Shown piece by piece: positions 2,520 through 61,357 of a stretch of DNA of 64,000 nucleotides. Numbering within the stretch: position 1 is the stretch's first letter; each line of letters starts with the position of its first letter. The translations under genes were made by a program, and so were the position numbers. Below the pieces are notes generated by a model, which was not told where the DNA came from, ran no database searches, and was given only the letters and a program-made list of their open reading frames with translations. Source of the stretch: Histomonas meleagridis 2922-C6/04-290x. Lineage: Eukaryota; Protista; Parabasalia. The DNA is taken from assembly GCA_020184695.1 (NCBI GenBank), contig JAANOX010000279.1, forward strand, positions 186,001 to 250,000, read 5' to 3'.

Positions 2520-5500
2520 TTATTTGGAAAGAAGATTAATGTCTTCTTGAGTCAATGGAAGATAATCACTTAGTGTTTTAAATATTTAAAATCGATTCCA
2601 AACAATATATTAAAACCTTAAAATATTGAAACAAACATTAAATAAATAAATTTTATATCTTTAAGACTAAAATCGATTCCTTTATGAGTGAGAAGTAATT
2701 GAATAATTTCAGCATTCTCAAATTTAGCTGCATACATAAGTGCTGTTTTAAATAATTTGCATGATTTCCAAATATTGTCTTGAAATCGTAAATAATTGAA
2801 ATAAATATTAAATAAAACAATTTAATATCTTGAATATTGACATCAATTCCTTTTTGCTCGAGAAGTAACTTAACACCTTTTGACTTTTCTCGTTTAGTTA
2901 ATATGATAAGTGCTGTTTCAAATAAATTAAATAATTTCCGAATAATTTTTGGAAACTTTAAATAATTTTTTGAAATCTTAAATAATACAAAAAAATATTT
3001 TGAGCATTAACATCAAGACCTTCTTTTTGGGTAAGTAATTGAATAACTTTAACTTTAGCACTTTTAGCTGCACGTAATAATGGAGTTGCAAATAATAAAC
3101 AGAAACTCCAATTAAAATTATGAAATTTTAAATTATTAAAATAAATTTCAAATCATTCAAAAAAATATTTTTAATATTGACATTAATATCTTTATGATCA
3201 ATCAGTAATTTAACTATATCAAAATCACTATCGAATAATGCTATCAAAAGTGCTGATTCAAATAATTTTAATGATTTCCAAATATTATGTTGAAATCACA
3301 AATTATTACAACAAATATCATATAAAGCAAATAAATATCTTGCGCATTAACATCAATTCCGTCTTTTTCAAGAAGTAATTTAATCATTTCAATATTACCA
3401 GAAAAGACTGCTTCCATAAGCGCTGTTTGAAAAAATTTAAACAATTTCCTAATAATATATTGAAACGTTAATTTAATAATATAAATATCATATAAAACAA
3501 ATAAATATCTTGTGCATTAACATCAAAATCTTTTTGTTCAAGAAGTAATTTAGCAAATTCATTTTTTTCATGTTCAATAGCATGAACAATTGGTAAAGAA
3601 AATATTATGAATAATTTCTAAATAATATTATTAAATCCAAAATGATTAATACAAATTTCAATAATAATAAAAAAACTTTAATTACAGAATTTATATTTTC
3701 TTTTCGTACAAGTGCTAATAATAAATCAGGATCGCCTTTTTCAAATACTAAATCCATGAATGGCTTAAATAAAGTAAATAAATTCCAAATATAATATTGA
3801 AATAAAAAATAATCAAAGCAAATTGAAAACATTATAAATTAATAGCTGTAACATGGATGTTGATGTCTTTATGCTCAAGAAGTAATTTAAATATTTCATT
3901 ACAACCATTTTCAAATGCAAATAACAATGGTGTCCCAAAAATTTTAAATTAATACGAAATATTATTTTGAAATAGAAAATTAGTATATTTGACTTTTTCA
4001 ATATTAACATCAATTCCTTCATGCTCAAGAAGTAATTTTACCAATTCTATATTATTATTTTTAATTGCAATAAACAGTGGTGAATAAAATATTTAAAATA
4101 ATTATCAAATATTATTTTAAAATATAAAATTATTGAATTAAATATCAAACATGTTAAACAAATGGCAGCATTATTAACATCAATTCCTTTCTGTTGAAGA
4201 AGTAATTTAACAACATCTATAGCACCAGAATTACAAGCAGCTTTTAATGGTGTCTTAAATAATATAATAAAATACCAAAAAATTAATTAAATAAACAAAC
4301 TCACAATTGACATCAACGTCATTCCTTTCAAGAAATGATTTAACTTCATCTAATTTCGAATTTTCGCATGCATCAATGAAATGTTGTTTAAATAATCTAT
4401 AAAAACAAGAAAATATTGAAACAAAAATCAAAATTATGCCTTTCAATCTCACTTTTAATTTTTTCAGCAAAATTTGGATGATCACTTTCTAGTGCATGCA
4501 TAACAGCAGTTTTAAATATTATAAAAAAACACCGAATTTTATTTTGATATATTAAATAATAAAAATATATTTTAAATTAAATTAAAAAATGTCTTTGGTT
4601 TCCGTATCAACTCTTTTATTTGTACGAAAGAAAGTAGATAAATTCAAATTGTTCCCGCTTTTAGCTATAAACATTAGAGCTGTTAAGAAAACAATGAATA
4701 AATTCCAAAAATGATTACCAAATATCAAATCATTAAAATGAATTTTAATACTATCAAATAAATATTCTTTGCATTTAGATCAATATTATCTTCTTTAAGG
4801 AGATCTGAAATAAAGGAAAATGAATCTTGTTCTGCAGCATACATAAGACATGTATTAAATAATTTTAATGAATTCCAAATATAATTTATAAACATTAAAT
4901 TAAAACAGTAAATTTCAAATGTATTGAAGAAACATCTTTAGCATTTACATCAAATCCTTTTTTTTTCATAAGTGCATCGAAAGATTGTATATTTCCATTT
5001 TTGATTGCATGATGAATGGCTAACATATTATCTTATAAGAAATTCCAAATCTAAAAATGATATATGAAATTTTTGAAAAAAATATTAAATGTTTGAAATT
5101 CATATCTTTGGCATTAATGTCAATTCCTTCTTGGTCAAGAAGTAATTGAGTAATTTGATAGCGATATGTTTCAGCTGCCCACATAAGTGCTGTTTTAAAT
5201 AATTTAAATAATTTCCAAATATAGTTTTGAATTATCAAATTTTTAATTTGATCTTTAAATAAAGTGTTTAAATATCTTTAGCATTAATGTCAATTCCTTT
5301 ATCCTCAAGAAGCTCTTTAATTTTGTTTAAGTTTTTAAGTTTAACAGCATTTATTAAGGGAGGATCATATAAAGAAAAAATATATTAAATGATCAAAATA
5401 ATCTTCAAATAAATTAAATAAATGTCAATGGCGGCATTTTTATATATTTCTGATTCACTAAAAGAGTCAGTATCAGAACTATCAGAAGTATAACTCGTGA

Positions 5501-5522
5501 TACTACTACTGTATGAGCTCAT
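2520..5522 (-). CDS. Multi-ankyrin-repeat protein (about 612 aa if inserts are removed), split into 19 segments by 18 non-GT-AG inserts
   Basis: ATG at 5522, preceded by Inr-like TCACA. Segments of 30-34 codons mostly read as ankyrin repeats (e.g. FKTALMWAAETYRYQITQLLLDQEGIDINAKDM, FGTPLLFAFENGCNEIFKLLLEHKDINIHVTAI). The last segment FKTLSDYLPLTQEDINLLSK ends in TAA at 2522-2520. No stop codon in any coding segment (manual translation). Confidence 0.8.
2583..5420 (-). other. Array of 18 intron-like inserts in the ankyrin gene
   Basis: Operational boundaries lie between the I/V/M codon after AKD and the F-equivalent codon two before TA/TP (a few nt of slide possible). 71 nt: 5200-5270, 5030-5100, 4860-4930, 4690-4760, 4517-4587, 4090-4160, 3770-3840, 3603-3673, 3433-3503, 3263-3333, 3093-3163, 2923-2993, 2753-2823, 2583-2653. 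51 nt: 5370-5420, 3940-3990. 34 nt: 4260-4293 and about 4393-4426 (inferred). Confidence 0.8.
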
Positions 5523-12441: not shown

Positions 12442-15400
12442 TTAAGCTTTGTAGAGATCGTTTTTGTTGATTGCACCAGTACAGCCGCCATTGTGATAAA
12501 TAACTGCTCTGTTACCATTAATTTCTCCAACCACAAAAACTGCATTATACACCCAGTTATCCCAGTGATAGTTTTGACCATAAACTTTTGCTCCTACTCT
12601 GACCCTAACTCTGTCGCCAACTCTGATTTCTCTTCTTTCTCTTTCAATTCTCTCTCTTTCTTCTCTTGCCTTTCTTTCTCTTTCTGCTGCTTCTCTTGCC
12701 TCTCTTGCCTTTCTTTCTCTCTCTTCTCTTTCCATTCTTTCTCTTCTTTCTCTCTCTTCTTTTTCTCTTCTTGCCTTTCTTTCTCTCTCTTCTCTTTCCA
12801 TTCTTTCTCTTCTTTCTCTCTCTTCTCTTTCCATTCTTTCTCTTCTTTCTCTCTCTTCTCTTTCCATTCTTTCTCTTCTTTCTCTCTCTTCTCTTTCTCT
12901 TCTTTCTCTTTCTTTTTTGATACCATCTATTTTTCTATGTACATCATCTGCTGTTGTATTTACAATTGAAGTAACATCTTGAATAACTTGATTTTTATGA
13001 GCGCTGTCATTAGGGGGAATTTGATTGAAAAATCCTTGTGTATTAATAATTTGGTTTTTCAATTGATCGCGATTAATTTCAATAAGTTGATTTGGTGTTT
13101 TATCAGCAGATTTAGCTATTTGCGTTGCTTGATTTTACACCTTGTTCTAATTTCTGCAAACGCTGGTTTCTTTTGAACGTTTGCATTATATTCATTGCAA
13201 TATTTTTTGCTAACTTCTTTAAGCTTATTATTTAAATCGTTTTTATGATTGTTTGGAAAGTTTTCATATGTTACTTGTTTCGAAATAATATCATTAAATA
13301 TTTGGTTTTCATCAACTTTAGGTGATTCATCACGATAATTACTTGCTCTTGATTTTGCATCAATAAATTGCTTTGCAAATCCATCAGCAATTTTAATTTT
13401 ACTATCAATTAATGCTTGAAGTTTTTGTTTTGAGTTCCTTTGTCGAGTGAATTCATTAGTACTCTCTGCACTAATTTTCTTAATTAAATCACTAATTAAT
13501 TTTATTTTATCAGATCCTTTAACATCTTCATTTTTAATTGGAACTTGACTTTTAATGTATGTTTCAATCTTCTCAGAAGTACATGAATTTGGATCAATAT
13601 CTTCAAATACAATTTTACCATTTAGATTTTGCTTGATAAATTCAGATGCTTTGTTAATAAACATTTGTCTATATGCTTCAAATATTGATGCCCATGATCT
13701 ATACTTATCTTTGTTAATACTTCCATGTACATATTTAGCATATTTTAATATTTGATTTTTGATAAGATTATGTCGAGTTTCATTAAGCTGAATACCATCA
13801 AAATATTGCTTAATAAATATCGGAATTTTTTCGTTTGTGTAATTTTCTGGCTTCTTAACTAATACATCAAAATCTTCTTTGTAATAAACATTTTGGAACA
13901 TGTTTTGATAATCAATAAGAATAATACTTTTAATTTCATCATATTTTTGAGCTGAAAATTGATCCCATTTTGGAAGTGCTGAATAAGCGTTATTGAATAT
14001 TATTGTTATACGGTTAATAATTATAGATATTGTATTGTTAAGTTCACTTGATTTATATTCTTTCATATAATCAAGTAATTGTTGATTATTATAATTCTTA
14101 ATGATCCCATCACATATTTGTTGTATATGTGTAGTATCAAATAAATTTTTGTCAACATCTTCTTGAAATGATTTACTTTTCATTAAAGAAAGAATTTGAT
14201 TTGATGCATTTAAAACTATTTCATCAGATGTTAATGTTTCTGTCAAATCCTCTATATGTATTGTTAATTGTTCATTAGCATTTGACTTTATTTGTATACA
14301 AGCATTTGTAAATTGAATAGTAATATATTCTTTAATTAAATTATTATACATTTCAAGTGCCTCTTTTGAAAATGAATTAACTAAGAAATCATTTGCAACA
14401 TTATTATCTTTTAATATATTTAAACAAAATGTAAAATCTTGTTCTAATAATTTGATACACTTTGGAATATAAACTTGAAGTTCTTCATCAAAAACTTGCT
14501 TAAATATATTTGATAGGCTAGAATTAAAATCTGATTTAAATGATGGGATTACTTTGAACTTCGAAAAGAATTTGTAATATTCTTCTATATATGAACATAA
14601 TGTTTGCCCATCAATTTTAGGTCTACTTTTTATTGTATCATTTATCAAAGTTACTATATCTTGTAATGATTTCCAATAAACATTAAGGCAAACATCATCT
14701 TGAGGAACATCATTACTGCATTGATATGGTCCGCATATAATAATATCTATATCATCAAGATATATTTTTGGTATATTGTTATCAACAAAAAAGTCAGAGA
14801 AAATCCTTTGTAAAGTTTGTTCATATGATTTTCTGTTTTTATTAGTATTACGGAAATTATTACGATCAATGGTATATCCGCATGCAGTAGAAAAGATTGC
14901 TGTCTTTGGATTTGGTGTTTTTAGTTTTGTTTTCATGAATTCAGAAAGCATAAACTTATTTATAAGTTGAGAAACATCATTTGTTTTAGGTGGGCCATTT
15001 GTAATAGAGATAGTAATTGTTGCAACTTGGAATAAAGTAAGAATCCCAGAAATTAGATATTGTGAAGAACCTTGAAGTGATTCAAATCCTTCTGTATCAC
15101 AAAAGAAAAGGTCACAATCTTCTGTATTACTTTTGTTTTCAACACCGCATACTTCTAGTAACTTATGAAGTCTAATTGGACCATAGATATTACATCCAAC
15201 TGTAATACTATTTGCTGTGTTTGCGGCTTTGAATGGTTCTTGAATAACATAGGTCTTTTTATTGCCTATAATTCCATGTATAAGCTGATTTAAAGTTGTA
15301 CTTTTCCCACTTCTTGTTGTTCCATAAAAAACAATCAGATGGGGATAATTTGCATTCTTAAAGGCATCTATTACCTCTTGATTTATTAAGGGCACACCAT

Positions 15401-15530: not shown

Positions 15531-15789
15531 AAGGGTACTTTTGTTGATGTACCTGTCAAAAGTTACTGTTTTGGCTGAACAAAATCTGAAATCATTGATA
15601 TTGGAGGTTTAAAAAATGTCAAATATTTTGATAGTACATTTAAAACCTTATGAATTTGCATAGAAAAAATTTAACAAGATATTCAAAATTGAATGTGTGG
15701 ATGTGAATAAACCGTCAGTTGAGGTGGTTAAATGATGATTTTTTTTAGTTTTAATTGATGGTCACATATTAACTCTCATTGAATCAATA

Positions 15790-16060
15790 ATAATATTATA
15801 ATAAAAATTAAATAAAATATATATACATCATTATAATTAACATCAATTCCTATTTGCTCATTAAGCAATTTGACCATTTTGAGTTACATATATGAGCACT
15901 GTATTAAATATTTTAAATGATTCCCAAATATTATTTTAAAGCTTGAAATCATTAAATTCAAAATCAATTCGTTTTTGCTCAAGAAGTAATAATATTACTT
16001 CTGAGTTACCATGTTCAGATAAAGAAATAAGTGTTGCTTTAATTAATTCCAAATATTTAT
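15790..16060 (-). pseudogene. Decayed ankyrin+insert units (about 2)
   Basis: Remnants of LLLEQKRID and EQIGIDVN, plus the insert core AATAATATTTGGGAATCATTTAAAATA-TTT AAT ACA; contains indels. Confidence 0.6.
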
Positions 16061-17507
16061 TTGGTATTGCTCTTTGTTGAAATAAACAATAAATCAACTA
16101 ATTTAATTTTTTTAGTGTTAATATCAATTAATAAATTTTTTTGATCAAGAATACATTTTACAAGGAAACTATTTCAAGTCATTGAAGAATAAACCAAAAT
16201 ATCATTTGGGAATTAAACATTTTCCAAATTGGAAAATTAATTTAGAAATGAAATCGAAAACTTCATTCCTTCTTCCAACAAAAACAAAAAGAGTTCATAG
16301 TTATAACGCATTATACATTCCTTTTGTATTTCTTATTATCTTTGTAAAGTTTATTTTCATAAAGATAATGGAAAACTTCATTTTTATGATATTGAATTGT
16401 AATATCAAATGTATGCTGATAAATCAGAAACATGTAAATATGTTTCACTTATATTAAGATGTATTTATTAATAAAAATTTAAAACATTTAATAGCAGAAA
16501 AAAATGCTGCATAATAAATCAACGAAACATTTTATTTATTAATAAAATATGAACACCTTTCATAAGTTGATGGTTCGATAAATTGATTAAAATTAATTAT
16601 CTTGTGATGATAGATCTCGAAGTTTCATCATTTCGAATTATTTTTGAGATTTTATTCGGATTAACTCCTTCTTTTAATAATTTTTATGAAGTTCCCAATC
16701 ATTCTTTGAAAGTGTTTTGTAATAAACTGAAAAAGGTAAATATGTTTAATGTTACTGATTCCTTTTTCTTTTAAATATTATATGAAATTTAAAGATTTTT
16801 TATTTAAAATTTTTGGTTTAATAAGCTGCTTCCAGGAAGGATGATACAGAAATTAATTAATTAAACGAAATTAAAAGAATACGGATTAACATTATACAAA
16901 CCCGTGATGAAAGATGTTGATGTTGACACGTTTCCTTCATTTAAAGAAAAATTAGATTCAATCAAAATAATTTGAAATTTCTAGAATTCCTTTGAGAATT
17001 CATTCATCATTAATGATTTTACCTGAGTTTTTTGTTGAATTATGACTTTGTTGATTTCCCAAATGAAAAATAAAACAAATTTTCCGTTTCATTGCTTTTC
17101 TTGGATCCAATAACTTTTGCTTAATTATACATCTTTTATAGTGTTTTAAATATGTGCATAATTAAAATTAAAATTTGTCTCGATTCATCAGAATAAATAA
17201 ATTTCGTTCGATAGTAAAATATTGAAATGAGTGAAACATCATGTTAGTTTAATATTAAAGGTATATGTTTATATCAAAAAAAATCATTTTTTATGAAAAT
17301 CAGCTGATTTTCAAGACGATTTAATCATTTTTTATTAATTTGCTAAATAAAGTAATTACACATCTTAACTTTGCATTGCTTTTTTTACAGTAATGACGAC
17401 ATGTTTCTATAAAAACAAATAAACTTGATAACAAGAATTTTTTGAAAATTGCAACCATAACAAGAATTGACTAAGTTTGTTTGTAACGAAAATCAATTTT
17501 AAATTAA

Positions 17508-45641: not shown

Positions 45642-47486
45642 TTACCCTTTTTCGTGAAGCAAGTTAACTATTTCTGCAAATCAATCTAAATGTGCCAACT
45701 TCTCTGCCAAAGAAAGTGCTGTATTAAATATTTTACATAATTTCCAAATATTATTTTGAAATATCAAATTATTTAAATAAATTTTAAATAAAACAAATAA
45801 ATATCTTTAGCATTAATATCAATTCCTTCTTGTTCAAGAAGTAATTTAACTATTTCTGTATGACCATTCCAAGATGCAAACATAAATGCTGTATTAAATA
45901 ATTTAAATAATTTCCAAATATTTTTTTGAAATAAGAAATTATTAAAATAAATATTAAATAAAACAAATAAATATCTTTAGCATTAATATCAATTCCTTCT
46001 TGTTCAAGAAGTAATTTAACTATTTCTGTATGACCATTCCAAGATGCAAACATAAGTGCTGTATTAAATAATTTAAAAAATTTCCAAATATTATTTTGAA
46101 ATAAGAAATTATTAAAATAAATATTAAATAAAACAAATAAATATCTTTAGCATTAATATCAATTCCTTCTTGTTCAAGAAGTAATTTAACTATTTCTGTA
46201 TGACCATTCCAAGATGCAAACATAAGTGCTGTATTAAATAATTTAAAAAATTTCCAAATATTATTTTGAAATAAGAAATTATTAAAATAAATATTAAATA
46301 AAACAAATAAATATCTTTAGCATTAATATCAATTCCTTCTTGTTCAAGAAGTAATTTAACGATTTCTGTATTACCTTTATCAGATGCATAAATAAGTGCT
46401 GTTTCAAATAATTTAAATAATTTCCAAAGATTATTTTGAAATCCCAAATTATTAACATAAATACAAAATAAAACAAATAAATATCTTTAGCATTAATATC
46501 AATTCCTTCTTGTTCAAGAAGTAATTTAACTGTTTCTATATGATCATTTAAAGATGCATAAATAAGTGCTGTATTAAATAATTTAAAAAATTTCCAAATA
46601 TTATTTTGAAATAGTAAATTATTAAAACAAATAATAAATAAAACAAATAAATATCTTTAGCATTAATATCAACTCCTTGTTCCAAAACATATTTAACAAG
46701 TTCAGAATTTCCTAAATCTATAGCAAATGTTAATATATTACTTGGAATTAAATTATTTTGAAGAAAATGTTTAACAAGATATAAATTGCCAATTTTTGCT
46801 GCTTCATTGATTGTAGATTCATTAATTTTCATTCGTTTTTCAAGTAAATATAAAAAAATTTCATAATTTCCGCTTTTGATACATATATTTCCCAAATCAT
46901 TAATATCCTTTTGTTTCATGTTTTCATTTAAATTTTCTAATTTATTTTCATAAAGATATTTAAAGATATCATTTTGATGAAATTCAATTGCTGTTTCATA
47001 TGCATCTTCAAATGAAGAATGATTTTGTTCACATAAATGAATGATTTCTTCATTTCCACCTGCAACTGCATATTTACCTGTTTTATCTAATTTTGCACCA
47101 TTCACAAGTAAAAGTTTAAAACATTTAATAGATCCAAAAAATGCTGCATAATCAATTAATGAAACTTTTTTCTTGTTAATAAAAGAACATCTTTCATAAA
47201 GTGATGGCTCAATATATTGATCGAAATCAAAATTTGTTTGTGATGATATTTCTCGAAATTTATCTATTTCGTCATTTAGAATTATTCTTGCAATTTCACT
47301 TGGATTATGTCCTTCTTTAATATATTTTTTATGAAGTTCCCAATTATTCATTGATAATTCTTTATAATTTTCTATAAAGATTTTATCAATTTTGTTCCCA
47401 TTGAAATGAATTATTGTTTTAATTTCATTTTCTGTTTTATAATGAAAAAAACGGTGAGTTAATATTTTTGATAATGCTTTTATCAA
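45642..47486 (-). CDS. DUF3447-type ankyrin protein whose C-terminal repeats are each interrupted by a 71-nt insert
   Basis: Insert-free N-terminal exon (IILNDEIDKF, SLIDYAAFFGSIKCFKLL, AVAGGNEEIIHL), five full ankyrin segments and a terminal segment. TGA at 45683-45681, TAA at 45644-45642. The start is uncertain: the ATG at 47505 is 1 nt out of frame, across a T7 run. Confidence 0.72.
45729..46680 (-). repeat. 170-bp tandem repeat (99-nt ankyrin segment + 71-nt insert), six near-identical junctions
   Basis: atatctttagcattaatatc occurs at 45801, 45971, 46141, 46311, 46481 and 46651 (exact 170-nt period). Inserts at 46579-46649, 46409-46479, 46239-46309, 46069-46139, 45899-45969 and 45729-45799. 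Confidence 0.93.
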
Positions 47487-52026: not shown

Positions 52027-52399
52027 AAGCCAATTAATAAATCAAGTTTTATTCCTCTATTTGATATGGAGAATCATCGTAAACAATTCAATTTTGAAAT
52101 GTTTATACAGCACTTTTTGCTTTGGAAAAAGTGGTTTTGGGTTCACTTTGATCGTATTTGTGAATGAAGACGTTTATTTGGCACTTTTTGATTGTTTTCA
52201 TCAAATTGCAGTTTTATTTAGCAGTTATTACAAAAAGTGACGTCTTCTATGTTCAAGTAAATTATTTTTGTTAAAAATGTTTTTGGTCGATTTTTATTAC
52301 TTTTTTTTGTAAGCAGATAAAAAACAACGAAAATAAATTCATTCAAGTGCGTCCCTTTATTGGGTTATTTTTCGCATCCGAGTGTCATCCCCTGTGAAA

Positions 52400-53000
52400 A
52401 TAATTTCCAAATATTATTTTGAAATATCAAATTATTATATTAATATGAAATAATACAAATGAATCTATTTAGCATTAATATCAAGTCCTTGTTTATTCAA
52501 GAGTAATTTAACAATTCTATGAACTTTTTCATATGCATAAAACGAGCGCTGTTCAAAAATAATTTCCAAACATTATTTTGAAATCCAAAATTGAAATAAG
52601 TTTTAAATGAAACAAATAAATATTTTCAGCATTTACATCAATTCATTCTTTTTCAAGGAGTAATTTAACTATTTCAATATTTCCTGATTAAAAGTAATCA
52701 TTTTCAGTTTCGTTTTGGTTAAATTTTTAGAATGAAGTTCGATATGTTTGGATGTTCCTTCTATGGATGTTGATATTACATTCATTTGCAAATGAGTCAT
52801 AAATCCAATTGGTGGCAGACAGTTTTTCTAATATATTTGAAATATAATGTGATTATTAAGTGTTGTTGCTATGATAGCACCAGTTCTTTTAAAGAAGATG
52901 ATAATTAATCCACATTTCAATCTGTTAACAAGAAATTACTAATTTCCTGTGAACAAATAATTTTTAAATTAGCGAAAGAAAATCTTGTATCATCAATTCA
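52400..53000 (-). pseudogene. Decayed DUF3447-ankyrin gene with insert-containing units
   Basis: Remnants of LLLEKE*IDVNAE and LDINAK, with insert cores (ttccaaatattattttgaaat at about 52405 and 52563); many stops. Confidence 0.6.
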
Positions 53001-53834: not shown

Positions 53835-56667
53835 TTATATATTAATTTTATTATTTTCTTCGAAATCTGTTGCAAATGGATCTTCTTTAACGTTATCCAT
53901 TTTCATTACTGTTTCCAATGTATCAATGTTTTCAAATTCATTTTGTTCTTCACTTTTTGATGTATTTTCTTCTTTAATTTTTTTGTTTTTGATTTTAATT
54001 ATTAGAATTATAAGTAAAATGATTATGATTATAGCAGCAATTGTAGTACAAATAGATATGATAAGTGTTTGATTATTTTTTGATGATGCTATGTCTGTTG
54101 GATATAAAATCGTAAAGAAATTAGAATAAAAACTGAGATAATATGAATATATAACTATTGTATATTTATAGTAGAATAATAATGTCGGAATGTAAATGAT
54201 ATCTGTCGATGCATGTGAAACTGAAAATGAATTTGAAATAGAAGTGTAAATTGATAGAGTTTTCGTGAATATTAACGTAACTGTTAGTGATAACATGTAT
54301 GAAGTACTTATATTACTAAGAATTGTGAAAGTAATATTTGGATCATACAATTCAAACGTATTCGTAAATGTGTTTGAGAATGATTTCGATGATGTAAATG
54401 AGTTCGTAGGCCATGGAAAACATCCGGCAATTGTTATGTCACGTGAAATATTTAATGCACCAAAATTATTTGATTCAGATTCATATTCTGTTGTCGTCAT
54501 TACAATTGTAGTGTTAATTGATTCAAATGAATTCGATTGAATATTAGGTTCTGTTTCACCATAATAATAAATACATTTAAGTTTAGTACAATTTGCAAAT
54601 GCTCCCGATTCAATTTCTTGTAAATTGTCATAAATGAATATCGTATATAAATTAGAACAATAATAAAATGAATTCATACAAATCTTTTTAATACATTTAG
54701 GAATTTCAAATATATTATCTGTTCTTCCAATTGGATATGATATGATTTCTGTAATGTTTTTATTATAAAGAATTCCATCTTTTTCATAATTAGAATAATT
54801 TGCATTATTTTGTGAGACATTAATAAATTGAAGTTGATTACATAAATAAAATAAATTTGAACCAATGATTTCAACTGAACTTGGAATTGTAATATTAATT
54901 AATGAAATACAATTTCGAAATGTTGATGATCCAATTTCTTTAATTCTTTCGCTGAGATTTACGATACTCAAATTAGTGCATGAATAAAATGCATGTGAAC
55001 TAAGATTTTTAACTGTACTTGGAATTGTAATATTAATTAATGAAATACAATTTCGAAATGTTGATGATCCAATTTCTTTAATTCCTTCGCTGAGATTTAC
55101 GATACTCAAATTAGTGCATGAATAAAATGCATGTGAACTAAGATTTTTAACTGTACTTGGAATAGTAATATTAATTAATGAAATACAATCTTGAAATGAT
55201 GATGATCCAATTTCTTTAATTCCTTCGCTGAGATTTACGATACTTAAGTTTGTACACGAATAAAATGCATGTGAACCAATGATTTCAACTGAACTTGGAA
55301 TAGTAATATTAATTAATGAAATACAATTTCGAAATGCTGATGATCCAATTTCTATAATTCCTTCTTTGAGATTTACGATACTCAAATTAGTGCATGAATG
55401 AAATAAATTTGGACCAATGATTTCAACTGTACTTGGGATCGTTATATTAAATAATGAAATACAATCTTGAAATGCTGATGATCCAATTTCTTTAATTCCT
55501 TCTTTGAGATTTACGATACTTAAGTTTGTACACGAATAAAATAAATTTGAACTAAGATTTTTAACTGTACTTGGAATAGTAATATTAATTAATGAAATAC
55601 AATCTTGAAATGATGATGATCCAATTTCTTTAATTCCTTCGCTGAGATTTACGATACTTAAGTTTGTACACGAATAAAATGCATGTGAACCAATGATTTC
55701 AACTGAACTTGGAATAGTAATATTAATTAATGAAATACATGAATAAAATACATTCGATTCAATACTTGTAATAGTATTTGGTATATTAATATTTTGAATA
55801 ACATGTTGAAAATGCTAACATTTCAATTGATTTAACACCTTCTTCAATGTTAACTGTATATAAATTTATACATGATTCAAACGATGATGATCCAATAATT
55901 TCAACTGTACCTGGAATAGTAATATTTCGTATTGAAGAACATGATGAAAACGATGATTTTTGAATAATTATTACACTTTCTGGAATTATTATCATATCTG
56001 TACTTTTCCCAAAAGGAAAATAAAGAAGTTCTGTAATATTTTTATTATAAAGAATTCCATCATTAGCATAATTAGAATAATATGAATAATTATTTAATAC
56101 TTCGATCATTGAAAGATTAATACATCCTGAAAATGATGAAATAGAAATCGTTTTAATTGAATTTGGTATTGTAATATTCGTTAATGAAATACATTTCTGA
56201 AATGCATTTTTTTCAATTTCTTCAATCCCTTCGTTAAAATTTATTTGAAATAATTTAGAACATTATTCAAATGAATAGGGTCCAATTGATTTAACTCCAC
56301 TTGGAATATCAATATTTTCTAATGAAATACATTCACGAAATGATGATGCAGATATTGTTATTACTGATAAAGGAATTTTAATATTTTTTAATAATGAACA
56401 TGAATAAAATGCTTCTTCTGGAATATTAGAAATCCCTTCTTCAATTATAATATTTATAGCACGTTTTTTAAGATCGGTATATATAAAATCATTATCATTT
56501 TGAATCGTCAATGTTTTTGAATCTTCATCAAAATAATATTGAAAAGTATATGTAAAAAACATGAAAAATATAAATAATAATGAATGAAGATTTTTATTTT
56601 TAATTGAAGACAATTTTTTTTTGTTATTGCTTAATAAGAACATTATAAGATTAATTAAAGCAATCAT
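53835..56667 (-). pseudogene. BspA-like LRR surface protein with one in-frame TAA (about 56264) and one frameshift (about 55790)
   Basis: TpLRR repeats, S/T stalk, TM helix and EDPFATDFEE tail. The frame is open from about 55785 to 53835; the upstream ORFs are collinear. Confidence 0.8.
54880..55745 (-). repeat. 138-bp coding tandem repeat (two 23-aa TpLRR units per period)
   Basis: Near-identical blocks encoding CISLINITIPSxVxxxxSxAFYSCTNLSIVNLSEGIKEIGSSxF. Confidence 0.88.
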
Positions 56668-57482: not shown

Positions 57483-58121
57483 ATGAATAGAAAATATTGG
57501 GTTAAAAGTTTCATAGCATATTGCTCTGTCTACAAGGCAAACGATTTACATAATGATTATATTGTTTCCTTGAAGATTCGAAAGTACACTTTGCCAAATG
57601 AGTTAGAAGAAATCAATCGCGAAGTAACAGTTTTAAGGGAACTGAATCACCACAATGTTGTCAAGTTTGCATTGGCTCTTGACTTTTTCCCCATCAACTT
57701 GACTCGTTATATAAAAACTCATCAAATCCAGCCCGATTTGCTCAAGTCTTATGAGGATCAACTATTCTCATGTCTTAATTATCTTCATTCCAAAGGAGTA
57801 ATTCATCGTGACATAAATCCCTCGAATGTTCTTCTTGATGAAAATTGGCATCTTAAGATCGGTGGCTTCTCGTTAGCTCAATTTGCAACTCCACAAGCTT
57901 CTACGCCTAATTTAGTGACAGCACATTATCGTACAACACGAACTCTGTTGATGTTTCTAGCGCAGGTTGTGTTCTTGCCGAAATGCTCATTAGAAAACCT
58001 TTGTTCATTGGAGATAACGACGCTGAAATCCTCCACAAAATATTTAATATCATTGGAACTCCAAATGAGGCTTGTGGATGTGATTATATTACAAAAATTA
58101 TCACATCCGTTCCGAACATAA
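57483..58121 (+). pseudogene. Decayed CMGC (CDK/MAPK-like) kinase
   Basis: IHRDINPSNVLL and LKIGGF (DFG lost); after a frameshift, GCVLAEMLIRKPLFIGDNDAEILHKIFNIIGTP; internal deletions. Confidence 0.78.
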
Positions 58122-59029
58122 TCCTACAATTGTAACACTCAACAAGTTCAAATCTAACTAATCATTATGCATGTTTCAAATCAATTAATCTTTCAAAGAT
58201 AAAGTTGAGGAAATATTTCTACAAATACCAAATGAAAATATCCCAAAAAACGAGTGAAATATATTTTGGAAATGAAAGTATATAAAATATTTTTGAGACT
58301 GAAGCTTAATATATTGAATGATTAAAATACATATCTACATAAATTTTACAAATGAAAGAACAAGTGTTTGGCAAATTGATTTGTTTCATTCTTCAGCGAT
58401 TCTCAATTTGTTATTTTATATCAAAAAATAAAAAACTTCTATATGTACATATAATTTTAAAATTGTAAAATGAAATAATATTTTTGGTCAGAGAAAAAAT
58501 CTGATTTGTGGTTTTACAATTTTTTGAACTTATCTCAAATTTATCATAAATATCGAAATAAAAATTACATCACTATACTTACATTTCCATTTTGAAATAA
58601 TATTTCATTAAATAATCCTTCAAATATGTAATATTATCACCAAAACATTAATCTCTTAAGTTATTTTTGCAATTACCATTTATAAATTCTCTTTATTACA
58701 AATTATAAAAAACCATGAAAAAATAGTTTACATAATAATTTCTAATATGATATCGTATTTTGATATACATATTTCTATTAATAACCATACATCATTGACA
58801 AGAGAATCTTTTTGATAGGATAGACATTTTTTTTGCAGGTATTTTATTTTGTAGATGTGTCACTTTTCGGATATTTACTTTTGTAAAGCAAGCCAAACAA
58901 AAAGCAAACAGCTGTATCAAGATACTTTTGTTAGTGATGATTTTGAATAACAAATATAATTTATTAATGAATAAGAAAATTTTCTACTAATAGAATTGTT
59001 TCACAATATTCAAATTGTTGTTCGAAATA

Positions 59030-59450
59030 ATTTAAATAATTTAAAACTTTGAAATTTCAAAATACCAAAATAAATTTTAAACAAAACAAATAAATATTTT
59101 TAGCATTAATATCAATTCCTAAAAATGATTGAAAGAAATATTGATGAAAATAAATGAACATCAGTTCCTTCTTGTTCAAGAAGTAATGAAACGATTTCTG
59201 TATAACCATTTAAAGATGCTAATATAAGTGATGTCCAAAACAATTTAAATAATTTCCAAATATTATTTTGAAATCCTAAATTATTAATGTAAATATTAAA
59301 TAAAGAGAATATTTTTAGCATTAACATCAGTTCCTTCTTGTTTAAGAAGTAATTTCACAATTTGATCATCATGACCATTATAAGATTCCCACATAAGTAC
59401 TGTCCAAAACAAATTTTATAATTTCCAAATATTATTCTGAAATATTCCTA
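59030..59450 (-). pseudogene. Decayed ankyrin+insert array (about 3 units)
   Basis: FWTVLMWESYNGHDDQIVKLLLKQEGTDVNAKNI, a 67-nt insert, then FWTSLILASLNGYTEIVSLLLEQEG and a deletion junction; no start or N-terminal domain. Confidence 0.7.
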
Positions 59451-59527
59451 AATTAAATTAAATTAGAATTCGTTACTTTTTGCCTCATAAAGAACATAAA
59501 AAAATTTAAAATTTATATTTACTATAT

Positions 59528-61357
59528 TTAATTATTCTCATAAGGTTCAATTGATTGTTCGAATTCATTTCTTTTCCTTTCTAACTCTTTTATGTCGACA
59601 TTTTTTTCATTATTCGATAACCAATGAATCAATCTTTCGATGTATTTCTTAAGTGAATCTATTTCCTCCTTACTGTTTTCCTGGTACAACTTATTTATTC
59701 TGCGCCTCATTTCATATAACTTATTTTGGAAGTCATTAATAGCATTTATTTTTTCTTCGAACATTCGATCGATTTCTCGGTATTTTTCTGCGTCGTTCAG
59801 CATCTTCATGATTTGCTCATCTGTAAGTCGCCCTTCCTCGTTGGATATGGAATATACTTCAACGTTATTGGTTGAAATTTCTCGAACTGTAACTTTCAGA
59901 ATTTGATTGATATCGAGGTCAAAAGTTATTTCTACTTCTACCTCTCCTTTAGGAGCACGTCGTATGTTTTTAAGAGTAAATTTTCCTAATAAATTATTAT
60001 ACTTCTGATTTTGACGTTCACCTTCCAATACATATATTGAAAATTTGTGTTGGTAGTCATGGTTAGTGGTGTACCTTTTGTGATAAGTACATGGGATGAT
60101 TGTATTACGAGGAATAATGAAATCAGTTTTATCGTGTGTAATACGAACACCAAGTGAAAGCGGAGTAACGTCAACAACTTCAATTCCGTCAAGAGGACTT
60201 GCATTAATAGCTGCTCCATATGCAACAGCAATTTCGGGATCAATATTACGACATGGTTCTTTGCCAAAATATCCATGGAGTTTCTCTTTCAAAAGAGGTA
60301 TCCGAGAAGATCCGCCTGTTAGTACAATATCATCGATTTCAGTCTTGTTAAGCGAAGCACTTGCAATTGTTTCACCAACCGTTATTATCGTCCTATCAAA
60401 AAGTTCGTTGTTCAAATCTTCGAATTTTTCCCTCGTAATTTTATCTTCGATTAAACCAACTTTGCTATTAAATTTAATTGTTGCTTCATTGTGAACAGAC
60501 AAATTAATTTTTGCACTTTCACATTCTCCCATGAGAATGTATTTTGAGCGCTCTTCACTCATTATATCAAGATGATGATTATTCTTGAAACAAGTAGCAA
60601 AATAATTGAACATGTTATTATCAAAGTCACGACCACCAAGATTTGGATCTCCGCCCTTTGCCAAAACTGTACATTTATCATATTCGATTTTAACAATGGA
60701 AACATCAAATGTACCACCGCCAAGATCATAAATAAGAATAATTCGAGGTTTATATGGGTTGAAATTTGGATCATTAATTCTCTGCACTTCACTGTATGCT
60801 ATTGCTGCTGCTGTTGGCTCGTTGAGGATACGCATTACATTTAATCCAGCAATTTCACCGGCAGCTTTTATGGAATTTCGTTGAGCATCATTAAAATATG
60901 CTGGAACTGTAATAACTGCGGATTTTACTTTCACATTAAAGGTTGTTTCGATGTTGTTTTTGATTTGTTCGATTATCATTGCGGATATTTCTTCAGGATA
61001 AAATTGCTTTGTTTCACTTCTCCATGTTACTTTTATTAATGGGCGATTGTTTTCACCACGTTGAACTTTGAATGGCCAAAGTTTTAAATATTCTTGTATA
61101 ATTTCATCATCATAATTACGTCCTATCAAACGCTTGACATCAAAAACTGCATTCCCGACGTTACTTATCGCTGTGTTTTTTGCTTCAAGACCGAACAGTC
61201 TTTCATTTTCGGTAAATGTGACAAAAGAAGGAATAGTCAGCGTACCTAAATCAATTTTTGTTGAATATACCTTATCATTCATGATAATGCATCCACAGCT
61301 ATTTGACGTGCCGAAATCAATTCCAATTGGTATCTCGTCTTGCTCATCTTTCTCCAT
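59528..61357 (-). CDS. Hsp70-family chaperone lacking the EEVD tail
   Basis: GIDFGTSNS, VFDVKRLIGR, VITVPAYFND, NEPTAAA, DLGGGTFDVS, VTPLSLG. Confidence 0.93.
   Translation of the reverse strand: MEKDEQDEIPIGIDFGTSNSCGCIIMNDKVYSTKIDLGTLTIPSFVTFTENERLFGLEAKNTAISNVGNAVFDVKRLIGRNYDDEIIQEYLKLWPFKVQRGENNRPLIKVTWRSETKQFYPEEISAMIIEQIKNNIETTFNVKVKSAVITVPAYFNDAQRNSIKAAGEIAGLNVMRILNEPTAAAIAYSEVQRINDPNFNPYKPRIILIYDLGGGTFDVSIVKIEYDKCTVLAKGGDPNLGGRDFDNNMFNYFATCFKNNHHLDIMSEERSKYILMGECESAKINLSVHNEATIKFNSKVGLIEDKITREKFEDLNNELFDRTIITVGETIASASLNKTEIDDIVLTGGSSRIPLLKEKLHGYFGKEPCRNIDPEIAVAYGAAINASPLDGIEVVDVTPLSLGVRITHDKTDFIIPRNTIIPCTYHKRYTTNHDYQHKFSIYVLEGERQNQKYNNLLGKFTLKNIRRAPKGEVEVEITFDLDINQILKVTVREISTNNVEVYSISNEEGRLTDEQIMKMLNDAEKYREIDRMFEEKINAINDFQNKLYEMRRRINKLYQENSKEEIDSLKKYIERLIHWLSNNEKNVDIKELERKRNEFEQSIEPYENN

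Follow-up and report, generated by a model that had tools for sequence, protein, structure and literature searches.

Introns of types A and B in Trichomonas vaginalis and T. stableri are short, carry an internal motif at a fixed distance from the 3' junction and have ankyrin genes among their hosts; they always show GT/AG ends, have an ACTAAC-type branch motif fused to the 3' site and occur once or twice per gene (PMC12316389). Trichomonas introns are described as GT-AG without exception and the minor spliceosome is reported absent from Trichomonas (PMC12316389), while for the genome of Histomonas meleagridis a GC content of 28% and no more than one predicted intron in any gene were reported (PMC8529796). 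Here we analysed 64,000 nucleotides of H. meleagridis 2922-C6/04-290x (GenBank assembly GCA_020184695.1, contig JAANOX010000279.1, positions 186,001 to 250,000; this whole stretch is called the window), the host being a parabasalid, as a first, sequence-only reading of this DNA had supposed. Two genes of the window, gene 1 and gene 2, are split into single ankyrin repeats by short spacers, most of them of one length. Like the Trichomonas introns the spacers are short, parabasalid and equipped with an internal motif fixed from the 3' junction, but GT/AG ends and the branch motif are absent and there are up to 18 of them per gene. In a lineage treated as almost intron-free, one Histomonas gene carries 18 intervening sequences without canonical ends. 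With middling confidence we propose that the spacers are unconventional intervening sequences removed from RNA, which would have spread by duplication of a 170-bp module and in which only the 3' module would be ruler-like.

In U12-type introns the terminal dinucleotides vary, and the 3' site is set by how far it lies from an internal motif. Many Histomonas spacers likewise start in an ATAT context, but they contain no /RTATCCTT 5' site and no TCCTTAAC branch site (test range 10-15 nucleotides (nt) from the 3' end), and AT...AC boundaries would make 82 or 84 nt, breaking the frame. The nonconventional introns of euglenids are similar in being non-GT-AG, in lying in nuclear protein-coding genes and in having an unknown removal route; they are defined by end pairing and short C/G-containing motifs, while the Histomonas spacers show no end pairing detectable with RNAalifold or folding z-scores, are 88% A+T and occupy one homologous position in one repeat family. 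Very sharp length distributions are also found among the uniform tiny introns of Stentor (15-16 nt), nucleomorphs (18-21 nt) and Paramecium (20-30 nt). Those introns have GT-AG ends and sit at the minimum size of the spliceosome, whereas the main class of Histomonas spacers measures about 70 nt, coexists with shorter classes and has non-canonical ends. Animal ANK genes have one repeat per 99-bp exon and introns at the same loop position, which arose through exon-plus-intron duplication, but these introns are ordinary and variable in length. Translational bypass in phage T4 gene 60 and the yeast mitochondrial 'byps' also involves a short gap of defined length in an open reading frame (ORF), sometimes with a stop codon after take-off. 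Gene 1, on the other hand, is nuclear and has 18 gaps, with no frame-keeping match of take-off and landing and no stem-loop.

Ankyrin exons and spacers in gene 1 and gene 2

Both genes lie on the minus strand, as do all their spacers. Gene 1 (2520-5522; start codon at 5522, stop codon at 2520-2522) consists of 19 ankyrin exons with Pfam Ank matches and 18 spacers, and its stop-free exons cycle through three reading frames. Gene 2 (45681-47426; start codon at 47426) has an N-terminal part matching Pfam DUF3447 and Ank_2; its 3' part, within the same coordinates, is made of six ankyrin exons of 93 nt, a last exon that runs to the stop codon at 45681-45683, and six spacers.

Spacer length was measured between two anchors chosen independently of any splice model, namely the end of the codon for the conserved D/N of '..(N)A(K)D' and the start of the codon before T-A-L. 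The spacers of gene 1 measured 57, five times 77, 43, 43, 77, 57, 77, 83 and six times 77 nt, the 83-nt spacer becoming 77 nt when two further codons are counted as exon, while each spacer of gene 2 measured 77 nt. The sequence-only reading had claimed a fixed insert length of 71 nt for 14 of 18 inserts in gene 1 and for all six in the DUF3447 gene. These counts are confirmed, since the anchor distance of 77 equals that 71 plus 3 nt on each side (the first codon is usually ATT and the last usually TTT), and trimming one codon per side reproduces its coordinates 5270 and 2583. It had also placed the exceptions in discrete classes of 51, 51, 34 and about 34 nt. The two of 51 nt hold (57 between anchors, 20 nt shorter than the main class), while the value of 34 depends on where the boundary is drawn and becomes 37 in the same convention (43 between anchors, 34 nt shorter than the main class).

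The 77-nt spacers of gene 1 are g1_02 (5197-5273, its 71 nt being 5200-5270), g1_03 (5027-5103), g1_04 (4857-4933), g1_05 (4687-4763), g1_06 (4514-4590), g1_09 (4087-4163), g1_11 (3767-3843), g1_12 (3600-3676, the first anchor choice giving the 83 nt mentioned above), g1_13 (3430-3506), g1_14 (3260-3336), g1_15 (3090-3166), g1_16 (2920-2996), g1_17 (2750-2826) and g1_18 (2580-2656, where the last insert of the sequence-only reading ended at 2583). The 57-nt class comprises g1_01 (5367-5423) and g1_10 (3937-3993), the latter missing about 20 nt of its 5' half, and the short class of 43 nt comprises g1_07 (4390-4432) and g1_08 (4257-4299), the latter made of a 20-nt 5' part and a 23-nt 3' module. 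The spacers of gene 2 are g2_01 (46576-46652), g2_02 (46406-46482), g2_03 (46236-46312), g2_04 (46066-46142, identical to g2_03), g2_05 (45896-45972) and g2_06 (45726-45802).

A hidden Markov model (HMM) of the exons, used as an independent junction caller, gave 77 at every junction of the window that it called between confidently matched exons, with one exception, a short-class junction read as 40 instead of 43; anchors extrapolated from the HMM may err by 3-6 nt where the exon match is partial. Eighteen spacers with their flanks were aligned by MAFFT without an internal gap. Tandem Repeats Finder reported a period of 170 (93+77) at 2574-3552 and at 45714-46678, with 93% matches in the gene 2 array.

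Eight exons were compared with Pfam Ank and all matched positions 3-32 of 33 with E-values from 2e-3 to 5e-10, five of them reaching the gathering score. All 19 exons of gene 1 are open although they lie within a stretch of 21-25% GC, where a random 31-codon frame would be open about 5% of the time (estimated from base composition), and second codon positions are the most conserved (0.71). The exons are coding, conserved ankyrin repeats. A non-coding satellite or dead tandem repeat was considered as an explanation of the arrays and rejected on the open exons and the conservation of second codon positions; decayed copies look unlike the intact arrays.

Reading frames and spacer boundaries

The spacer lengths of gene 1 and gene 2 span all three classes modulo 3. 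Both 57-nt spacers, g1_01 and g1_10, contain an in-frame TAA, and in g1_02 a TAA follows immediately after GAT ATT. A stop codon lies 9 nt ahead of the next exon in g1_03, where it bounds the extension of that exon, in g1_09, where it is the last of several stops in the downstream frame, and in g1_18. Substitutions in the spacers, sorted by 3-nt phase, were 0.370/0.323/0.339, with no coding periodicity. From the spread modulo 3, the in-frame stops and the missing periodicity it follows that in several copies the spacers cannot be read through.

Assuming homologous boundaries, the removed piece covers at least positions 6 to -9 of the 77, so its length would be 65, 68, 71, 74, 77 or 80 nt. The exons fill Pfam Ank positions 3-32 and leave three profile positions empty; excision of 68 nt would yield repeats of 34 residues and excision of 71 nt repeats of 33 residues, and both may fit. 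Two spacer-free junctions at other loci have 9 nt between the anchors ('N-VMF-ESAL', L001) and 6 nt ('R-KV-RNSL', L010).

GT is absent from several spacers with their flanks, none being present in g1_01, g1_02 and g1_03, and position counts showed that neither AG nor AC is conserved at a homologous 3' position and that G is conserved at neither boundary. Ordinary introns of the GT-AG type are excluded for the spacers, in agreement with the earlier proposal that terminal dinucleotides are not read. No frame-keeping GT-AG, GC-AG or AT-AC boundaries common to the copies were found by eye and by position counts. A 22-nt GT-AG reading fits g1_08 only and is defeated elsewhere by upstream stop codons. 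Splicing of the opposite strand was also rejected; plus-strand GT...AG pairs are present around the spacers because of Thr and Ala codons, and the implied 90-nt unit would not give the observed frame shifts. The TGG of a TTTGG motif in the spacers was considered as a tryptophan codon of an extended exon, a reading rejected because stops lie between motif and exon in g1_03, g1_09, g1_10 and others. The 3' motif ACTAACACACAG of parabasalid and diplomonad introns, which goes with a 5' GTAYGT, is absent from the ankyrin genes; allowing two mismatches, it had two matches in the window, fewer than expected by chance and neither in the ankyrin genes.

Two-part build of the spacers

Without gaps, the spacers of gene 1 had a pairwise identity of 0.654 versus 0.41 by chance, which fell to 0.36-0.44 after a shift of 1-3 nt and was 0.54 after a shift of 20 nt, the latter value pointing to ATTT tracts that recur inside the spacer with a 20-nt period. 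For third codon positions of the gene 1 exons the identity was 0.54 versus 0.39 by chance, so the spacers evolve more slowly than silent sites. By this comparison the insert sequence is not just drifting, and that part of the sequence-only reading does not hold in the form given.

The 5' consensus of the spacers is ATTTAT in a GAT|ATT context, with T as the second base in 22 of 22 copies; TTTGGAAWT is the internal motif. At the 3' end TTTGG occupies positions -23 to -19, and there is hardly any variation in the T at -5 and the TTT at -3 to -1. GG was found exactly 20 nt ahead of the anchor codon of the next exon in 39 of 55 exons from six loci, while every other offset in the module region (14 to 26 nt upstream) had at most one occurrence. 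This fixed 3' module of 23 nt is common to the 43-, 60- and 77-nt classes. The 5' part is variable and measures about 20, 34-40 or 54 nt (20, 34 and 54 nt in the window), the shorter classes lacking blocks of about 14 to 20 nt, most often 17-20, from the 5' half. The discrete length classes are thus explained by gain or loss of such blocks in a 5' half with 20-nt periodicity.

Further properties of the spacers were noticed. Their T-tracts alternate at distances of about 13 and 7 nt, making up the 20-nt repeat within the 170-bp exon-plus-spacer unit. On the DNA these would be phased A-tracts, which recall DNA that is bent or positions nucleosomes. AUUUA pentamers are frequent in the spacers as well.

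Exact matches to the spacer motif all adjoin ankyrin exons, and one-mismatch matches elsewhere in the window occur at about the number expected by chance. Introners and introns derived from miniature inverted-repeat transposable elements were rejected as sources, the spacer motif being never dispersed and occurring only beside ankyrin exons. No terminal inverted repeat was seen on reading the spacer ends, on which no repeat search was run.

Spacer lengths at other loci and in relatives

Homologues of the N-terminal part of gene 2 with 51-61% identity were found on ENA metagenome contigs. Nearly all of these proteins stop at '..INAKDI' or in a short hydrophobic tail, that is, inside the spacer. 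Metagenomic spacers measured 80, 77, 77 and 77 nt (L007), 77 nt (L001) and 60 nt (L002), and their identity with Histomonas spacers was 0.54-0.65 in register and 0.31-0.46 when shifted. Relatives whose proteins share no more than 31-60% identity keep the 77-nt register.

A third H. meleagridis array, L010, has about 20 exons; eleven of its junctions measure 77 nt (six under a stricter anchor filter), several 60-61 and the remaining ones 70, 72, 76, about 80 and 88 nt. An in-frame TAA occurs inside an otherwise good ankyrin exon of this array (L010:9490-9510, '..VVKLIL*QKGVDIN..'). The DUF3447 ORF and the array of L010 are separated by about 1.2 kb of unrelated sequence with a 249-residue ORF that has no Pfam match. 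The L010 copy may have been inactivated recently. The spacers of L003, also from H. meleagridis, measure 43, about 64-67, 43-44, 61, 45-46, 60, 62, 60 and 63 nt.

Spacers that are T-rich and non-GT-AG occur at the same repeat position in DUF3447-ankyrin genes of Tritrichomonas musculus (40, 34 and 33 nt) and T. foetus (52 and 25 nt); these loci (L005:4080-4460 and L006:4070-4440) have no frame-keeping GT-AG ends. Such spacers are of old origin and widely distributed. One T. musculus spacer opens with ATATCATT and contains TTTTAAC, which gives it a U12-like look, but AT-AG boundaries would be off frame by one base.

Among 46 stringently anchored junctions, 24 measured 77 nt and eight 60-61 nt, the others forming a cluster at 40-46 nt or being singletons; over all loci the lengths peak at about 43, 57-61 and 77. 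The 77 nt (71 in the earlier convention) are a sharp mode across genes and species, not a universal requirement.

This distribution bears on the mechanism put forward in the sequence-only reading, in which the machinery would either recognise a fixed fold of the RNA or gauge the full 71 nt. The sharpness of the main class, with about half of the stringently called junctions at one value, is what a ruler of that kind would produce. On the contrary, spacers of 43 and 57-61 nt stand within the same genes and the same genome, those of L003 range from 43 to 67 nt and only the 3' module is invariant, so that a ruler of 71 nt does not hold in general. As regards a fold, RNAalifold gave no consensus pairs for the 18 sequences with flanks, single-sequence folding z-scores ranged from -1.8 to +1.7 and were centred on zero, folding energies being no different from those of shuffled controls, and the one candidate hairpin showed no covariation. 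Neither a bulge-helix-bulge of the tRNA type nor an IRE1-type structure was found, there being no conserved helix or stem-loop at the cut sites. Nothing in Rfam was matched, whether gathering thresholds were applied or E-values up to 1 admitted, and no small nucleolar RNA or microRNA family was seen; no tRNA was detected in the window by ARAGORN. The fixed fold is not borne out, and a machine of either type is highly improbable.

Decayed copies and selection on spacer length

The window contains five spacer-split ankyrin loci, of which three, all on the minus strand, are decayed, a status set by exon frameshifts, stops or truncation and not by spacer length. The decayed DUF3447-ankyrin copy (15760-16760) has exon frameshifts and stops, spacers of 70 and 42 nt and has lost its third spacer. 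The decayed ankyrin fragment at 52385-52720 has spacers of 67 and 68 nt, the second truncated, and the ankyrin fragment without an N-terminal part at 59010-59480, directly downstream of an Hsp70 gene, has spacers of 73 and 71 nt and one truncated at its 5' end. All six measurable spacers (73, 71, 70, 68, 67 and 42 nt) deviate from the main class, with small indels, although the spacers of the decayed copies are nearer to the gene 2 consensus than gene 1 spacers are to one another. In the intact genes 1 and 2, on the other hand, indels were found in none of the 20 main-class spacers. Fisher's exact test on 0/20 versus 6/6 gave about 4e-6, and still below 1e-4 when the gene 2 copies were counted as three, copies within one array being non-independent samples. 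The contrast between intact and decayed copies indicates that spacer length is under selection; spacer length and register are under purifying selection.

Equal lengths might instead reflect history only, that is, recent tandem or gene duplication of the 170-bp unit with no selection on length. The repeats of gene 2 are 93% identical and two of its spacers are identical, the motif is confined to the neighbourhood of ankyrin exons and the length classes differ by sub-repeat blocks, all as duplication would have it. Yet the spacers of gene 1, just 65% identical, still align without gaps, the less diverged spacers of the decayed copies all have indels, and the 77-nt register persists in the distant relatives and in the third H. 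meleagridis array. We regard history alone as quite improbable. The view that the inserts are not junk tandem duplications stands in so far as length is constrained, both in the window and, by register, in the relatives, while the arrays were indeed built by tandem duplication of the exon-plus-spacer unit of 170 bp. Duplication and constraint are thus both at work.

Annotation of the arrays and their expression

In the GenBank annotation of H. meleagridis no gene was called over the ankyrin exon arrays (L003:6288-7600; L010:8513-11829; L004:11830-19332), and annotated DUF3447 proteins end inside the first spacer; the gene models of T. foetus and T. musculus do likewise. Current proteomes probably contain truncated versions of a large family of ankyrin/DUF3447 proteins.

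The same annotation would be expected if the arrays were not expressed as one protein and only the first ORF were translated, possibly with a hydrophobic tail from the first spacer, the downstream exon-plus-spacer units being relics or a reservoir for recombination. Translation continued out of the upstream exon does give about 20 hydrophobic residues, and the three decayed copies of the window and the in-frame TAA in one L010 exon also suit unjoined arrays. Against this, gene 1 would on such a view code for only about 45 residues, whereas 18 more exons are open and ankyrin-like with conserved second positions, the layout of open exons and spacers is kept in distant relatives, and the arrays of T. 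foetus and T. musculus finish in proper terminal repeats with stop codons. That the arrays remain unjoined is in our judgement unlikely. If the spacers were not removed, many open and conserved exon arrays of one large family would persist unjoined, which would still be odd.

Removal could also take place at the DNA level, as for the internal eliminated sequences of ciliates, the assemblies then representing the unprocessed form. The spacers are AT-rich, without GT-AG ends and quantised in length, and TA is frequent, although not invariant, near both ends. They occur, however, in every assembly examined, including two long-read assemblies made independently from cultured cells as well as short-read metagenome contigs, and neither nuclear dualism nor programmed DNA elimination is known from parabasalids, both of which count against this explanation and leave it extremely improbable.

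A putative removal of the spacers from RNA

The explanation that we favour is removal of the spacers from RNA. The non-coding spacers occupy the same loop position of each ankyrin repeat, between Pfam Ank positions 32 and 3, and would be removed, most likely from RNA, without GT-AG ends. The exons are intact and conserved in shifting frames, so that spacers must be removed if a protein is to be made. The 5' part consists of U-tract sub-repeats with a 20-nt period, and the 3' module is a constant 23 nt opening with UUUGG. The 3' junction may be set at a fixed distance from UUUGG with terminal dinucleotides not read, in a manner reminiscent of the spacing between branch site and 3' site in parabasalid and U12-type introns. 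A small indel would misplace the junction and break the frame, and indels would for this reason be removed by selection. The 71-nt uniformity of genes 1 and 2 would then be due to descent, the 170-bp module being copied in tandem and between genes, together with purifying selection. The number of excised bases may be 68, 71, 74, 77 or 80.

Several observations weigh against removal from RNA. No conserved terminal dinucleotide or fold recognisable by known machinery was found. Protein searches and a junction-seeded exhaustive representative search gave no transcript, complementary DNA or peptide showing removal, and in metagenomes of the Joint Genome Institute neither the DNA pattern of a spliced junction nor that of the 3' module had a match. 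No description of these spacers was found in the literature on parabasalid genomes and introns. At L003:6975-6985 the place of the first exon codon before T-A-L, right after a spacer, is taken by TAA, so that not all junctions need be homologous in position; either this junction lies further 3' than the others or the repeat is defective. Finally, stop codons in the two frames that continue from the flanks number 26 and 19 in the spacers versus 47.5 +/- 6.4 in mononucleotide shuffles (the third frame is enriched, with 65), and a single frameshift would suffice to bridge 23 of 27 spacers versus 35% expected, a depletion inflated by shared ancestry and phased T-tracts and weakened by the simplicity of the shuffle null. 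Ordinary introns need not show such a depletion, which keeps recoding or intron retention alive at low probability. As a separate observation, many spacers yield a hydrophobic stretch of about 20 residues when read in the upstream frame, which could matter if a spacer were sometimes retained.

In a recoding scheme the ribosome would enter the spacer and shift by -1 or hop, the RNA staying uncut. Besides the depletion of stops in the upstream and downstream frames and the many bridgeable spacers, there is a 2026 preprint that reports read-through of stop codons in Trichomonas and points out that the question of possible frameshifting in split genes has stood open since the genome project of 2007. 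On the contrary, four of the 27 spacers cannot be bridged, among them g1_06 and both 57-nt ones with their in-frame stops. The position of the shift that would be needed varies between copies from the first to the last codons, coding periodicity is absent, and no frame-keeping match of take-off and landing codons can be read from the sequence. A hydrophobic insert of about 25 residues per repeat would moreover prevent ankyrin stacking. Recoding is judged very doubtful.

Should the spacers be removed from RNA, the intron counts of the lineage and its rules of splice-site recognition would need revision, the gene models of Histomonas, T. foetus and T. musculus would truncate the ankyrin/DUF3447 family, and a splice junction apparently placed by distance would become directly testable. 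We suggest tentatively that Histomonas and probably the wider tritrichomonad lineage might possess a new RNA excision route, either non-spliceosomal or a strongly diverged form of spliceosomal removal, although we rate this as rather unlikely. Such a route would act on U-rich spacers without a terminal dinucleotide signal and make the 3' cut at a fixed distance from UUUGG. If it exists, hundreds of unannotated intervening sequences would be hidden in an organism described as nearly intron-free.

Other features of the window

The window is AT-rich and gene-dense, with long uninterrupted ORFs for a PI3-kinase, XPB, STT3, ribophorin I, Hsp70 and an actin-family protein. Pfam searches identified DUF3447-ankyrin genes and BspA-type leucine-rich-repeat genes, which are parabasalid hallmarks. 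The BspA-type leucine-rich-repeat gene at 53835-55739 (minus strand) is built of tandem 138-nt units within a 414-nt super-repeat with 90-92% matches. A CDK-like protein kinase gene at 57483-58135 (plus strand) has a frame change near 57940, and about 10 residues are missing between ..YR.. and ..DVSSAGC..; it is probably a pseudogene or an assembly error in which no ankyrin-type spacer is involved. The Hsp70 protein of the window is encoded with an identical sequence on contig JAANOX010000279.1 of H. meleagridis assembly GCA_020184695.1, which identifies the organism. The Hsp70 gene at 59528-61357 (minus strand) is a divergent paralogue showing 44-47% identity to two H. meleagridis proteins annotated as cytoplasmic Hsp70. 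At 12627-12915 a CT-rich, microsatellite-like array with periods of 24 and 33 is overlapped by ORFs on both strands.

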